DNA of 62,943 nt, the filler included, from Lenisia limosa (Eukaryota; Protista; Breviatea): assembly GCA_001655205.1 (NCBI GenBank). It is 10 parts of 10 records of this genome, joined end to end, with 100 filler letters (N's around TTAATTAATTAA, not from the genome) between each part and the next. Parts side by side here need not be neighbours in the genome. Positions count along the whole stretch, not along the records: positions 53,330 to 58,807 come from LPNZ01010289.1; 9 more parts are not named here. One strand, written 5' to 3'. The translations under genes were made by a program, and so were the position numbers. Under the pieces are notes generated by a model. It did not search any database, was not told the origin of the DNA, and was given only the letters and a program-made list of their open reading frames with translations. Of the stretch, positions 5,788-58,955 are shown in pieces. Position 1 is the stretch's first letter; each line of letters opens with the position of its first letter.

Positions 5788-7587
5788 ATGGCTCTTGTTG
5801 CCAGCTTACGAGGCATTGCCAGGTCCTTTATCGCCCCCCAGTCATTCTCCTTGATCCGATCATTCTCAACTGCTAAGGCTTTTGAACAAACTAGGCCAAA
5901 AGACGTCAAGTTGGCACCCTTCCTCTTTTGCCTCACTCCTTAGGAAAGTGATTGCTGTCTCGTCCACTAAAGGAGGAGTCGGTAAATCTACTACTGCTGT
6001 CAATCTTGCAGTATCTCTGGCTAAGCTCGGACACAAGGTGAGCGACTCCATCTGTGAACAGTCTCCTAACAAAAGGATCTGAACATCTTCGTCATATCAC
6101 GAGTTTTATCCTTCGTTCACATCACCCCACTATTTCACCTCTTCGCTCTCATAGTTCAAACATCTAGTGTGTTTATTATACCTTTTTTCATTCAGCAAGA
6201 AACTCGCCAATGTTATTGTATTTTGTTTCCTTATTGACACGCAAGACGGGCATCCTGGATGCTGATATTTACGGCCCATCCGTTGCCACAATGCTCGGAC
6301 TTGAAGGCAGCCAGGTGTTTTCTGCTGGTGGGCTGGCTGTATGGATTAGTATCGCTTACCTAGCAACAATTTGTACAGTAGAATATAAAGAAGCAGAATT
6401 TTCCAATTGTGGTGAGAACCGTCTTTCTTAGTTCTCCACAAACAAGAAAAATACAAATTTGCGACATTTGGTTTTCTTTTTTGAAAAGGTGAAAAGGGTA
6501 GCATATCCTTCTCGCACCTAACTCCCCAGATGGAGAGACCATGGAGCCCTATGAAGCCCACGGGGTGTCCTGCATGACCATGGCCTTTATGGTGCCCCCC
6601 GAACAGGCAGTCATGTGGCGTGGTCCAATGGTGGCGGGAGGTGGGAGGGGTGCATGTTAGGAGTTAATGATTGGATTGTATTCATTATACATGTTCATTT
6701 GAGCAGATGGATCCAGTCAGATATGTTCCTCATTGAGGTTTTATTCCATTAACTCCATAGCTCTCAATTCGATGTACAATCAGTGCAACTGGGGCCCACT
6801 GGAGTACCTAGTTCTTGACCTTCCCCCTGGCACGGGCGATGCCCATTTGACAATCGCACAACAGTTCCATATTGATGGTGGGGTTCAAGACTGGATGGAA
6901 ACTGTTATGTAAGATGGTTGTGCCTGACCCTGTAGGAGCGATTGTTGTTTCCACCCCCCAGGATGTTGCACTCAACGACGTTATTCGAGGAATTGCCATG
7001 TTTGACAAGGTTGATGTTCCAGTGGGGAGGGGGGGTCAGTATGCGCCAAAAAATTGTTCAAATTGGGAAACCTAATCTTATAGATTCTTGGAATGGTTGA
7101 AAACTTCTCCTTCTTCGAGTGTCCAAACTGCCAGCACGTGACACACATTTTCGGACGCGAGGGTGCTGTCAAACTTGCCAAGGAAAAGGGTGGGCTAACT
7201 ATGTCACCTACTGATCAATTCGTGACCTTGGGCATGCCTTTGTACTTCTTAAAGACAGGATATTCCAGACTGATGTAGTTTCGGTCTACAAAACAGGTCC
7301 CAAAAGACTCTAGAATTGACCCTTTAGATATCCGTTTGTTGGCGGAAGTTCCGCTTCATGCTGACGTGGCGTCCTCTTCCGATGCTGGCGTGCCAATCTC
7401 CATCCGCGACCCGGACTCCAGTGGGGGGTCTATTGGGTATACCTTTTGTGGTGGTCTTTTGCATTGACAGAGTTGACGGCTTATAGTCCATTCCAAGGCA
7501 TACATGCAACTTGCTGTGCACCTTATTGAGGAAGTTGAGCTTGCTGAGGCTATGGCTGAGCCTGTTACTGTATTTGAGGAGGAGTAG
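5788..7587 (+). CDS. NUBPL: Mrp/NBP35-family P-loop Fe-S carrier, mitochondrial IND1/NUBPL type, 9 exons
   Basis: N-terminal presequence-like [14 protein letters not shown]...LIRSFSTA, Walker [45 protein letters not shown] and C-terminal CPNC. It lacks the N-terminal 4-Cys motif of NBP35. TAG at 7585-7587. Confidence 0.9.
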
Positions 7588-53329: not shown

Positions 53330-54340
53330 AAGTCATCGATCTTCACAAAGCAATTATCATTGGGCTTGACCTCGGTTCGAAAAAAAAAAAGGGGAAATAT
53401 CGATAGTTTTCGAGGAGTAATCGAGACATTCAGCCTTTTTTCAAACCGAAGTGAAACCCTATCCCCAATGCCAAATTCAAGAGAATCGCATACTGAAAGT
53501 TTCTTCAGATACCACGAAATCAATGGACGCTTCGCCCTAAATAGTTAGAGGAAAAATAATGGACCATCACGCTAAGATGATTTGTGTTATTTTACAGAGA
53601 AAAGCTTTTGAAAAAAGGCATCTGATCCCAATGATGCATACGCTGTGTTATCCTCTCAGCAGGTCCCACCCCCCAACACACACACAAAGAAAGAGATACA
53701 TTCACACATAAACACAACAAACACAGTAACCTTTTCGTTGAGTTCAGTGCAGCTGATGGGTAAAGCGCTGTTATCGAGTCGAACCTTGTCAGCCACTCTC
53801 TACGCAGGTTTGTTAGAATAATATTTTTTTTTGAAAAAAAACAACAAAAAAAAGTTTCCATGAGATTGTCACCCCCCTCCACCAGGAGATTGTTCCCGCC
53901 AATGTCAACACACATCCACATGGGATATGGGGGCGATAGGGGTGCATGGTTGTGCAGGGCCTGAAAAGTGTCAACATGGGTTTAATTTGAGAAGAAGGAA
54001 ATTCTTACTCTTCAATAAATAGAAATTGTGAATATTTGATGTTGAGGAAATACATGAAATCACACGGTATTGTTTTTTGCTTTTAAAAAAAGCTGTTAAT
54101 CAAAGGCGAGGGAAATCGGCTCATCTAAAAAGGGGGTGACAGTATCTGTTGTTAAGAAAAATAAAAAGGGGAAATAGAAAATTAATTGTTGAATAATAAG
54201 GGGGGATTACCAGAACCGCGGATGGGGGAGAGTGCTAATGCCTGGAAAGGGTTTTTTTTCGAGATCATAATTAAAGAAACTATGCTATGGGCCAATAATG
54301 AAACATTCCAAGATTTTTCCCCCATCTTGAACCAGACAGA
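53330..54340 (-). CDS. Exon-like segments of an unidentified gene (strand uncertain)
   Basis: Minus-strand exons chain in phase 0 (MCVDIGGNNLL|RVADKVRLDNSALPISCTELNEK|DNTAYASLGSDAFFQKLFS|GEASIDFV); a plus-strand reading is also partly open. Confidence 0.25.
53360..53461 (-). mobile_element. hAT-type MITE, family A
   Basis: GGGCTTGACCTCGGTTCGAAAA...TTCAAACCGAAGTGAAACCCTA; TSD not recognisable. Confidence 0.8.
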
Positions 54341-54613
54341 TACACATATCTATCAAAATATTCACAGATATCGGATTATTCACAGATATCGGAAAAATCA
54401 CAGATGAATGCAAGGTTTGGTATGCTGTAACCCCCCCCCCCCTGTAATATCAAAAACAATATTAATTTAGCTACNNNNNNNNNNNNNNNNNNNNNNNNNN
54501 NNNNNNNCCTCAAAGTGAAATTGAAGTGGGTGCCAATTTGAAAGACAGCCGGAAGTGTGCCCTCAACAAGCTCCAAGTAGTCGTACCAATACAGTGGGGG
54601 GAGGGCTACTATG

Positions 54614-54730
54614 TCTTCACTAAAATGTCAAGAACCATCAAAATTATCACTAAAATACCAAGTTTCATCAAAATTATCACTAAAATACCAAGTTTCATCA
54701 AAATTATCACTAAAATGTCAAATATCATCA
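54614..54730 (+). repeat. Tandem repeat, 30 bp x3-4
   Basis: Unit AAAATTATCACTAAAATACCAAGTTTCATC. Confidence 0.9.
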
Positions 54731-55062: not shown

Positions 55063-55162
55063 TAAAGCTTCACTTCGGTTCAAAAAAAGACTGAATTTCT
55101 CGATAAATCCTCGAAAACTAACGATATTTTACAGGTCTTTTTCGAACAAAAGTGAAGCCCTA
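55063..55162 (+). mobile_element. hAT-type MITE, family A (100 bp)
   Basis: Perfect 8-bp TSD GATTCAAG (55055-55062 and 55163-55170) around the family A TIRs. Confidence 0.9.
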
Positions 55163-55539: not shown

Positions 55540-55647
55540 GACATGAAGAGATGATAAAAAAGGTGAGCGTAAGAAGGATGACATGAAGAGATGATATAAA
55601 AGGTATGCATTAGAAGGATGACCTGAGGAGATGACAAAAAGATATGG
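55540..55647 (+). repeat. 40-bp tandem repeat (~2.7 copies) containing an exon end and donor site
   Basis: GACATGAAGAGATGATAAAAAAG|GTGAGC..., period 40 (55540, 55580, 55620). Confidence 0.8.
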
Positions 55648-55714
55648 TTGAAGCCATTCACAACAGTGAAAGAATGGCAGATGGAAAAGGGGAAAGGGGA
55701 GAAAAGGTGATGAC

Positions 55715-58351
55715 TAGAGCTCTTTCCAATTAATTCATTGTCCCAATTAATTGATAATCAATTTTTTAATTGTTTTAGTTGAGGACCAATTAATTTACCA
55801 ATTAAATAATCTTAAATGCAGCAGTGTGTTTAATGATAGTTTTATTTCAGGTAAAGAGGGATGNNNNNNNNNNNNNNNNNNNNNNNNNNNNNNNNNNNNN
55901 NNNNNNNNNNNNNNNNNNNNNNNNNNNNNNNNNNNNNNNNNNNNNNNNNNNNNNNNNNNNNNNNNNNNNNNNNNNNNNNNNNNNNNNNNNNNNNNNNNNN
56001 NNNNNNNNNNNNNNNNNNNNNNNNNNNNNNNNNNNNNNNNNNNNNNNNNNNNNNNNNNNNNNNNNNNNNNNNNNNNNNNNNNNNNNNNNNNNGACATCAA
56101 GGCACAGCTCCGCGAGCTTTTCGCTTCTGTAAGCTTCCTTAATAAGATAAAAAGGTTTTTATGATGAAAGGCGTTATCTCACCTTTTAGGGTGAGCTCAC
56201 TGCTGCCGATCTTGTATCGATGCCACTACCAGTCTCACACACCTTACTATTTAATATTTTTTTTTAGTCGAATGTGGGGATAGACAACCCTATTGTAGCT
56301 GCCGTAGTAGAAAAAGACACTGGAATTCGCGTCGGCAAAACCGTAGCTAAGCGAATCAAGAAGATGGTCAGCGTAAACAGTCACCTCGACTTCGACCGCA
56401 GAGCTCAGTCTCAAGAAAGCAATAAGCATTATTGCATGATAGGGTGTCAGAAGGATTAAAATGTTGCAAATGTGTCATCTTCTGCTGCTGTATTTGACTT
56501 CTGAAGCCAGAGATCACACTTCAAAACGGAAGGGGCTTCTCTCAAGGAATCCGAATGATCAAGACCGTCAAACATGCTGTCTGTAACATGGGTGGCATAG
56601 AGGCCGATAAGGAGGCGCGGAAGGTGCGGCTACAGTTTTATGGAAAGGAGGAGATTGTCGCCAATGCTTTATCAGCCCTACGCTGGGGAGCTACTCAGGA
56701 GAAGGAACTACCCAAAGAAGGTTTGTAAATATATTTGTATGTAAATTGCTACTGGGTCATTTGTGGTGAGAGCTAGTCCGTCTGATGTCTTTTAGAGAGA
56801 ATTAAGAAGGCCCTTGGCCTACTATCTGCTCCTCTCCATGAACCATTTGAAAGCATAAGGGACGATATTTACCACAGNNNNNNNNNNNNNNNNNNNNNNN
56901 NNNNNNNNNNNNNNNNNNNNATGACCTTGAACTCAAAGACGAACTGAACAGTGTTACAGACGTTATCAAAGTTAACATCTCAAAGTCTGCGGTCCTTCTT
57001 AAGAAGATGCGAACATTATCTCTGGTCAACCACGATGTCACACCCAATGAAGAGGTAGACCCAAGTCGCATCCTTTTTGGAGACGAAATTGCGTTCATGG
57101 GCGCTTTCTTCGGAGAGATGCCTGGCTTCCCTCGATTTTTGGCTTTAGGCCTTCTCAGTGGTATGGGCGATTTACTAATGGCAACGTGCAACCTTGGCGG
57201 TGACGACATCAGTTCAACAGATAGGGTTATGGAGAGCCAAGTTCCGGTCTCGACACACAAGGGAATGATTGAAGAAGAGGTTCGTCGAGCATTTTTGGGG
57301 ATAATGTGCTATAACGAACAGTTTGTAATATTCGCAAAAATAAGTAACTACAACTTGCTTCCACGTGATATGATGATTACTTTTCTACAGTGTGTCATGT
57401 TTCAGGTCAAAAAATACAAGAGCAGATTTACAGTCTCCATGACGCACCGCGGAGCTTTGGAGACAATCAGCCACATTTCAAAAGACACTCCAAATATCGC
57501 ATATATATTGCAAAAGCCGCTTCCCATGCTGTCGATGCTATCCAGCTTGGCCCAATCGACATGCCCTGATATTGCTGTCAAGATCCTCTGGGTTGAGTCT
57601 GGAATGAGAGGAGCAACCATTCAGGATGATCAGGTCATTGTTAACAAGACTGACTACGAAGAGAAGAAAGCAAGAGGAAAGAAGGTCGACACGAAGGAAG
57701 GGACAACACTTGGACCTGACAAGATTGACGCAACTGGAGGCGCTATGGCTGTTCTCAAGAGACAAGTTCTGCGAAAGGAAGGTAATGATGTGTCTTCCGT
57801 GCTCACTTACCAATCTAGTGTATGTAGTTTTTCTTATAAGAATAAATTGTTCAAAAAAAAAATAATTGGTACCTTTTAGAGATAAAGTTAAGCGAGTCAT
57901 TTTTAAACTCCAAAAACGGTTTTTGAATCAAAAAATCACAAACACATATAATGAACGATGTGATTGCTTCCACAATATTTCCTATTCACTGTTCAGGCCT
58001 CTTCAATTCCGTTTGAGCGTTTGTTCTCCAGATGCGGAACGGCTACAAAAACCGCCAGAACCCTGAAACATTGGCAACAACCATGTTCTGGGAACAGAAT
58101 ACCCTGCACTCTTGACTGATACGACACAGTTTAAGATAACGGCCAGGGTTTAATTTTGTTGAATGTAGTTTATATATCTGCTTATTGATTGTTCTCTGGA
58201 ATCAGAGTGTTGCTTTTTCTTTGGAAAATTTTGAAAAACTTCAAACACAGGTTAATGTTTCTTACAGAACATAATGGTCATTATAATGAAAGTCAAGTAA
58301 TGTGCGATTAATAAATAATTAATTTAATAAAATTAATTGGAAAGAGCTCTA
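55715..58351 (+). mobile_element. Full-length hAT-superfamily DNA transposon (~2.6 kb including gaps)
   Basis: Perfect 21-bp TIR TAGAGCTCTTTCCAATTAATT (55715-55735 and 58331-58351); perfect 8-bp TSD GTGATGAC (55707-55714 and 58352-58359); subterminal CAATTAATT repeats; internal transposase-like gene. Confidence 0.9.
56093..58119 (+). CDS. Divergent, intron-containing hAT transposase (5' end in a gap; may be partly decayed)
   Basis: Motifs in hAT order: LRWG (56678-56689), LHEPFE, PRF, PDIAVKIL, and last exon ASSIPFERLFSRCG...R (ERLFS at 58015-58029, the dimerization-domain motif carrying the catalytic E). GT-AG introns include 56721-56795 and 57820-57996. An intact CxxH and the first two catalytic Asp were not located. 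Confidence 0.7.
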
Positions 58352-58955
58352 GTGATGACTGAAAAAGGAGGGCAGTTAAAGTGTAAAATTAAAGAGAAAA
58401 GTGCGTGATATACACGTACATAGTGGAGAAAAGATACACCACCAACCACAAGCCACAGTAATTTTTATAGTCACTTTTGGAAAAGAACGAATCTCCACTT
58501 CTTTTGAAGAAATAGAATTAAAAATAATTACCGAAAATCCAAAACAAAACAACGCCAGACCTTGCAATGATGTCCAACATGCACAATTCCATCATCTTCT
58601 TCGTCAGGTACCGAAAGCAAAATGGTCACCTTACGTCCCATAACTACATACGGTTAATGGAATAATTGACCATTTTTTAATTTCATAACAATAAGACTTT
58701 GTTATTTGTTCGGCGATCCATAATTAAATCCGGTTAATGTAGAGAAATTGAGAGAAAAAAGAAGGGTCTCTTTGCAACCGCGACCATACTAAGATGTATT
58801 ACAATCANNNNNNNNNNNNNNNNNNNNNNNNNNNNNNNNNNNNNNNNNNNNTTAATTAATTAANNNNNNNNNNNNNNNNNNNNNNNNNNNNNNNNNNNNN
58901 NNNNNNNATTTTGGGTTTTTCTTTGTTTCATAGATTCCCATTACCCTCCCTCCAG

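Follow-up and report, generated by a model that had tools for sequence, protein, structure and literature searches.

A 62,943-nucleotide stretch of DNA from the protist Lenisia limosa (hereafter the window; ten parts of assembly GCA_001655205.1 joined end to end, filler included) holds a transposable element (TE) of the hAT type at positions 55715–58351, within a 5.4-kb piece from record LPNZ01010289.1 (53,330 to 58,807). We read this element as a young, non-autonomous, Pack-type hAT that carries gene fragments, and put the probability of this reading at about 0.6. As far as sequence can tell, the anatomy, with intact cis-acting ends, a broken transposase stub and gene fragments between them, is that of a transduplicating Pack-type element, a kind that is already known and fairly ordinary. 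The initial annotation had reported a complete hAT whose one spliced gene encodes a highly divergent transposase, possibly of a new lineage; the ends and the recent insertion that it described held up under analysis, and the gene did not.

The ends are of the hAT type by published criteria and comprise terminal inverted repeats (TIRs), flanking target site duplications (TSDs), and AT-rich subterminal regions:

55707–55714, unstranded: left TSD copy, GTGATGAC, with a T in second and an A in seventh place
55715–55735, plus strand: left TIR, TAGAGCTCTTTCCAATTAATT, a 21/21 match to the right end
55736–55863, plus strand: AT-rich left subterminal region with AATTAATT / CCAATTAAT repeats, ending at assembly gap 1
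58117–58330, plus strand: AT-rich right subterminal region with AATTAATT repeats
58331–58351, minus strand: right TIR, the reverse complement of TAGAGCTCTTTCCAATTAATT, 21/21
58352–58359, unstranded: right TSD copy, GTGATGAC

The perfect 21-bp TIR and perfect 8-bp TSD of the initial annotation were both confirmed (21/21 and GTGATGAC 8/8, with a TAGAG terminus). Allowing up to three mismatches, the TIR matches the two element ends and nothing else in the window, against 0.01 matches expected by chance, and the inverted repeat stops at 21 bp with no extension beyond. Agreement of the TSD copies at 8/8 has a chance probability of 1 in 65,536 for one given flank pair. The termini of hAT elements follow the YARNG rule, and TAGAG is of this type. 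Published hAT criteria are 8-bp TSDs, TIRs of 10–25 bp, and a size of 2.5–5 kb (PMC3942097); the 21-bp TIR falls within this range, and the element measures ~2.6 kb when the estimated gap lengths of the scaffold are used. Targets of Ac/hobo/Hermes-type elements follow the pattern nTnnnnAn, and subterminal repeats are bound by the transposase (PMC10368747). The TSD here, G-T-GATG-A-C, fits this pattern, which for a single site is weak evidence. The palindromic octamer AATTAATT occurs five times in the outer 150 bp of both ends and twice elsewhere in the 5.4-kb piece, a count at the ends that 0 of 5000 composition-matched shuffles of both ends equalled. GC content is 27–28% in the terminal regions (27% at 55715–55863, 28% at 58120–58351), 35–39% in the flanks, and 45–48% in the internal exons. 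Because the TSD fits nTnnnnAn, the TIR starts with TAGAG, subterminal repeats are present, and a hAT-like motif lies near the 3′ end, we agree with the initial annotation that this is a hAT-type element and a fairly recent insertion. The TIR had no match in the GTDB genomes, a collection that does not include the Lenisia limosa genome.

What is left of a transposase lies directly inside the right end, as one feature:

57964–58116, plus strand: putative relic of a hAT transposase C-terminus, LLPQYFLFTVQASSIPFERLFSRCGTATKTAR in frame 1 and a tail, PETLATTMFWEQN, running to a stop in frame 0 (ending at 58115), recognised by its motif only

The motif itself, ASSIPFERLFSRCG, is encoded at 57997–58038 on the plus strand and is the sole one of its kind in the six frames of the piece. 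We take it to match all conserved positions of the PF05699 hAT C-terminal block, catalytic glutamate included. The stub is ~50 codons long, and its frame opens at 57964 directly past a stop, at most 11 codons before the motif; judged against the domain consensus, the dimerisation domain presumably lacks its first half. Past ...GTATKTAR, the frame of the stub enters unrelated sequence, and the hAT-like tail PETLATTMFWEQN and its stop follow in another frame, a change that on the same consensus would indicate an internal deletion of a length not divisible by three. No intact, in-frame PF05699 dimerisation domain was found, and the 51-codon open reading frame (ORF) that contains the motif had no match in Pfam (E ≤ 10), PDB, or a word-index protein search. 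Motif and position are what mark the stub as a likely hAT remnant.

Splicing from upstream offers no supported route into this stub. The only donor with comparative support is AAG/GT at 57782; joined to an acceptor at 57996 it yields ...RKEGLFNSV followed by a stop, with the motif exon out of frame, and joined to an acceptor at 57879 it yields a 15-codon tail, EIKLSESFLNSKNGF, and then a stop. The motif comes into frame only from weak, unconserved donors, for example GTATGT at 57820.

The sequence between stub and left end is a mosaic. Its right half carries a large exon from an orphan protein family of few members. Two domains are conserved in this family, and the C-domain has a close counterpart on another contig, L001:

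56923–57819, plus strand: large exon, 299 codons
56921–57297, plus strand: N-domain of the orphan family (...SRILFGDEIAFMGAFFG...NLGGDDISS...), recognised by its homologues
57298–57512, plus strand: linker without a homologue, open in frame 1 and non-coding-like (GC content at first codon positions, GC1, 0.37; coding score ≤1.2 in every frame)
57513–57781, plus strand: 3′ part of the orphan-family C-domain exon, 5′-truncated and frameshifted, 87–89% nucleotide identity to L001 546–819
57782–57963, plus strand: intron or downstream non-coding part of the captured gene, with a donor common to L001

The segment 57513–57964 is homologous to L001, which has neither the TIR nor the hAT motif, comes from another assembly, and has an unreliable 5′ end. 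L001 is a 6657-bp contig (CBDLPA010000046.1) filed as an uncultured Colwellia metagenome-assembled genome (MAG), and it encodes P0002, one of the relatives of the large exon. DNA identity is 87% between window 57509–57818 and L001 543–855, and likewise 87% for 57513–57818 and L001 546–855. The likeness begins abruptly at ~57513, in the middle of the exon, and upstream of this point a base-level alignment falls to the random level (49% with gaps). In L001 and in P0003, another relative, the point matching ~57513 falls inside a long exon, and residues 1–86 of P0002, which are conserved in P0003, have no counterpart in any frame of the window. A 2-nt deletion at ~57567 in the window (CCC--TGAT versus CCCCCATGAT in L001) places AASHAVDAIQLGPID in one frame and DIAVKILWVESG... 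in another, a switch that tblastn displays directly; because P0003 and a third relative, P0005, agree with L001, the frameshift is derived in the window. The donor AAG/GTAATG at 57782, after ...RKE(G), is common to window and L001. Past it the likeness falls and then weakly returns (57899–57964 versus L001 1200–1285, 71–72% with indels), to end at 57964, precisely where the hAT-motif ORF opens after its stop and 33 nt before ASSIPFERLFSRCG. The captured sequence is thus fragmentary and chimeric, with a mid-exon breakpoint at 57513, a frameshift at 57567, and an end at 57964. L001 itself has no match to the TIR at ≤5 mismatches; its six frames lack any motif of the ER.FS type, and the 5.4 kb downstream are free of the hAT motif.

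Among 71 alignable codons, 18 of the 23 differences between window and L001 are at third positions, with a synonymous divergence (dS) of 0.49, a nonsynonymous divergence (dN) of 0.034, and a dN/dS of 0.07. Nearly all of the divergence would therefore have arisen in functional genes under purifying selection, so that the capture appears recent. Any neutral decay of the window copy must likewise be recent, which is consistent with the undamaged TIRs and TSD.

L001 looks non-bacterial: its homologue of the window's spliced orphan gene conserves the GT donor and has an intron that has diverged, its GC content is 41%, and its ORFs have no Pfam match. The contig is probably eukaryotic and would then have been mis-binned as part of a bacterial MAG. 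Its 232-nt inverted repeat (1–232 and 6214–6445) holds a coding-looking exon (…HDPAYWEERLLEDKKRKKQAEAQ, then GTATAC), and the left arm of this repeat reaches from the first base of the contig to the start of the P0003 homology. In the window, the linker at 57298–57512 possibly contains an in-frame intron. The 90 codons of 57298–57567 are open in frame 1, and the last 18 of them read the L001-type exon in the wrong frame.

The orphan family is very small, with fewer than ten relatives among 1.8–5.8 billion proteins. The large exon had one relative besides itself among 5.8 billion clustered proteins and six besides itself among 1.84 billion representatives (exhaustive HMMER); a profile word search added two further members, and a cluster look-up added one longer one. 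None of the eight relatives scanned has a Pfam domain, and no relatives were found in JGI metagenomes (single protein, alignment) or viral contigs. The homologue clusters contain one or two sequences each, on single contigs. The N-domain block (window 56998–57216) has 37–52% identity to P0004, P0006, P0007, P0008, P0009, and P0010, and the C-domain block (window 57568–57781) has 92% identity to P0002, 57% to P0003, and ~50% to P0005. The family consensus reads LFGDExAFMGxFFG...GGDDI in the N-domain and IRDDQxIVxK...KKVDTKxGxTLGPxxIDATGGAxxVxKRQ in the C-domain.

P0003, a C-domain homologue, and P0004, an N-domain homologue, are each reported from a 4556-bp contig. The pair may represent exons of a single gene, or else neighbours within one organism, and their relation bears on whether the N- and C-domains of the window share one parent gene. 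The MGnify numbers of P0002 and P0003 neighbour each other. Within the large exon, an intron at 57280 was considered and rejected, as VRRAF just beyond it aligns with VAKRAF/Y of P0002 and P0003. A likeness of the P0003 N-terminus to pogo/Tigger was also rejected, as this region has no Pfam match and aligns with the window's own exon. The C-terminal extension of P0005, GLFNIAYLTSKGG, may correspond either to the frame-0 reading of the motif exon (GLFNSV and its stop) or to a possible small exon at 57880 (FLNSKNGF).

The left half of the interior consists of a separate contig of the scaffold:

56093–56877, plus strand: contig with four coding-like exon candidates, E1–E4, showing a GC1 > GC2 codon signature (GC content at first versus second codon positions)
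56093–56128, plus strand: E1
56268–~56456, plus strand: E2
~56498–56720, plus strand: E3
56796–56877, plus strand: E4

Frame-keeping GT-AG joins can be drawn for E1–E2, E2–E3, and E3–E4, and none of the three is supported by a homologue or a transcript. Exons were searched one at a time rather than as a joined spliced protein; joined sequences were used locally only, in a pairwise alignment of E3+E4, which was negative, and in translations of candidate splice joins as a frame test. The Pfam Dimer_Tnp_hAT domain, to which the initial annotation pointed, had no match at E ≤ 10 in this exon-by-exon search, and six exon or frame pieces searched at the same threshold matched no hAT, RNase H, zf-BED, or other transposase family. 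Sub-threshold matches were to unrelated families (Viral_Rep, E 0.07; DUF5835, E 0.08; Mpv17, E 0.11). The orphan family profile found no Hermes and no relevant match among PDB sequences, the protein atlas gave no usable match, and Rfam had no match in the piece. E1–E4 had no significant similarity to the N-termini of P0004, P0008, and P0003 (all p ≥ 0.12).

Considering the parts of a transposase in turn, an N-terminal BED finger is not seen in the exons (no zf-BED match), with most of the 5′ part of the element inside gap 1, and a DDE/RNase H core with its all-alpha insertion domain is detected neither by Pfam nor by the PDB profile, with ~270 estimated bases lying in gaps. AlphaFold2 modelling of the large exon from a 7-sequence alignment reached a predicted local distance difference test score (pLDDT) of 38, too low for fold comparison. 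The initial annotation had held that a gene lacking an RNase-H/hAT fold would be captured cargo; at the level of sequence profiles no such fold was found.

Several claims about the gene have to be revised in this light. The motifs said to stand in transposase order are present, ASSIPFERLFSRCG as a hAT-like motif and LRWG, EPFE, and PRF as letters, the latter three in exons without detectable relation to hAT. The single spliced transposase gene is not confirmed, as its joins have neither homologue nor transcript and the conserved donor at 57782 puts the motif out of frame. Completeness and autonomy are not supported, given a short, apparently frame-broken stub and no hAT, RNase H, or BED signal. 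Nor is the proposed new lineage of divergent transposase: the large exon belongs to an orphan family, and part of it copies, in 5′-truncated and frameshifted form, a gene that also occurs elsewhere.

The element is divided among three contigs (up to 55863; 56093–56877; 56921 onward), separated by gap 1 (55864–56092) and gap 2 (56878–56920, 43 N), the lengths of which are estimates. From 56921 to 58807 the sequence has no gap, and this stretch carries the large exon and the hAT stub together with the right TIR, the TSD, and the flank. Left and right TIR sit on separate contigs of the scaffold, and the left contig belongs with the right one because both carry the identical 8-bp TSD; the position of 56093–56877 within the element depends on scaffolding alone. 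Gap 1 is bordered by AT-rich subterminal DNA on its left and by ~35 bases open in all three frames on its right. At gap 2, the E4 frame begins at 56798 and the frame of the right exon at 56923; they are out of register at the stated length, a mismatch (56876 to 56923, 47 nt) that carries no meaning because the gap length is estimated. Homologue coverage to the right of gap 2 begins at ~56932 (P0003) or 56998 (P0004, P0008, and P0010), the left side of this gap has no match to the homologues (p ≥ 0.17), and neither gap is spanned by any relative, so that both are unbridged.

The cis-acting parts that a hAT needs for mobilisation, its 21-bp TIRs and the AT-rich subterminal regions with AATTAATT sites, are present. 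Under the favoured Pack-type reading, the internal transposase gene would have been lost, leaving the ~50-codon stub of the original C-terminus beside the right end. Fragments of at least one unrelated host gene, an orphan N-domain exon and a truncated, frameshifted C-domain fragment with its intron, would have been acquired by transduplication; with the coding-like exons E1–E4 they make the interior a mosaic, and the long chimeric ORF that results would not encode a transposase. The enzyme itself, made from a gene at another genomic site, would have mobilised the element in trans, with cut-and-paste insertion duplicating the target GTGATGAC, and both capture and insertion would be recent events.

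A number of points weigh against this account. The comparison gene on L001 comes from another assembly and is not the parent copy in the window's own genome. The first 232 nt of L001 are a 99% inverted copy of 6214–6445, which makes its 5′ context unreliable; this repeat may stem from a chimeric assembly or reflect a long inverted repeat or duplication, and L001 could itself lie in a different element, so its gene is not proven to be an ordinary host gene. The frame of ~290 codons stays open across the junctions of the mosaic, for which we estimate a chance of ~0.003–0.01 over the 90 codons that have no support for this frame, and this could mean that the chimeric ORF is used. E1–E4 were compared with Pfam and the orphan-family homologues only, the gaps conceal ~270 estimated bases, and at a pLDDT of 38 a cryptic RNase H fold may, formally, be present. 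Neither a further copy nor an autonomous partner of the element was found in the collections searched, none of which holds the Lenisia limosa genome.

The main rival, which we consider unlikely, is that the orphan gene is native to the element, as an accessory or new mobility protein that accompanies a hAT-like lineage in several species, and that the window copy is slightly damaged. A tiny family whose fragments lie on short environmental or eukaryote-like contigs is what TE genes of poorly sampled eukaryotes often look like, the strong purifying selection between copies would fit an active TE gene as well, the reading frame is open over ~290 codons, and the 232-nt inverted repeat around the L001 copy could be the long TIRs of another element. 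Yet the clusters of one or two sequences on single contigs display no multi-copy amplification, L001 lacks the hAT TIR and the hAT motif, and no nuclease or DNA-binding signature was found with Pfam; moreover, the window copy is truncated and frameshifted inside an element with perfect ends and hence is not needed in cis. Stated for the family as a whole, namely that it is an element-borne transposase or accessory protein of an undescribed hAT-related lineage in poorly sampled eukaryotes, the proposal seems to us more doubtful still. If it were true, the strong purifying selection on the family would reflect a need for it in mobility, and the window would hold one damaged member.

There is also a slim chance that the assembly misleads, with the ends being the real ends of a shorter element and one or both internal contigs misplaced between them. 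Two N gaps among three contigs, neither bridged by a homologue, and frames that disagree over gap 2 at its stated length speak for such an artefact, but 56921–58807 is gap-free, so the association of gene fragment and TIR is no product of scaffolding, and the identical TSD ties in the left contig; only the placement of 56093–56877 is scaffold-dependent. Slimmer again is the chance that the initial annotation was right and the element is a complete autonomous hAT with an extremely divergent transposase of a new lineage. It has hAT-type ends, and ASSIPFERLFSRCG is placed and oriented as in a hAT; the GTATGT donor at 57820 allows a join that keeps the motif in frame, and a compact 2.8-kb element with a five-exon transposase gene exists in BuT2 (PMC3942097). 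Against this, no exon gives a hAT, BED, or RNase H signal, splicing from the donor conserved at 57782 does not read the motif in frame, and the exon adjoining upstream is a frameshifted and truncated copy of a gene that, where it occurs elsewhere, is not followed by a hAT domain. Moreover, the motif region opens after a stop, presumably lacking the first dimerisation half, and its hAT-like tail, judged by the domain consensus, probably runs in another frame.

The closest parallels to the favoured Pack-type reading are the Pack-hAT elements known in plants, maize and rice (PMC8903248), which likewise have hAT TIRs and an 8-bp TSD, no working transposase, and cellular gene fragments with introns inside. 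Here, unlike in those cases, the host is a protist, only one copy was seen, and the captured family is an orphan. A 2.3-kb non-autonomous hAT of Pyrenophora tritici-repentis has a chimeric ORF that retains the transposase C-terminus (PMC3538342). It resembles the Lenisia limosa element in being non-autonomous, in size, and in having an unrelated ORF abut a motif-bearing hAT C-terminus; it differs in that its chimera is in frame, includes the whole dimerisation domain, is multi-copy, and has a known autonomous partner, whereas the stub described here covers part of the domain, appears frame-broken, and is not read in frame from the conserved donor. With Hermes, hobo, Ac, and BuT2 (PMC10368747, PMC3942097), the element has in common an 8-bp nTnnnnAn TSD, short TIRs, subterminal repeats, a size of 2.5–5 kb, and the C-terminal (A/S)SxxxERxFSxxG motif; unlike those transposons, it shows no detectable BED finger, DDE/RNase H core, or insertion domain, and no dimerisation domain in complete form.

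Upstream of the element, the same piece contains other repeats. A ~96-bp foldback resembling a miniature inverted-repeat transposable element (MITE) is present at 53362–53457 (plus strand) and 55065–55160 (minus strand); the two copies are ~85% identical, lie 1.6 kb apart in opposite orientation, and have inverted termini of ~20 bp (GGGCTTCAC...GTGAAGCCC) with a DNA hairpin z-score of -3.8. Minisatellites occupy 54617–54730 (30-nt unit, x3.8), 55540–55640 (40-nt unit, x2.5), and 54357–54405 (18-nt unit, x2.7). The 40-nt array stops ~70 bp before the insertion site, and since the surroundings of the TSD look like the unit of this array (…GATGACAAAAAG…), the element appears to have landed in or beside a degenerate repeat.

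For annotation, the element is a warning that an ORF of ~290 codons between perfect TIRs need not be a transposase and that a perfect TIR/TSD pair does not prove autonomy. The analysis also draws attention to the orphan family, small as it is, whose two conserved domains are strongly constrained. On the favoured reading, the element would show cleanly how a hAT captures gene fragments, beyond the plant cases that are well studied, and its intact ends imply recent hAT transposase activity in the host eukaryote.

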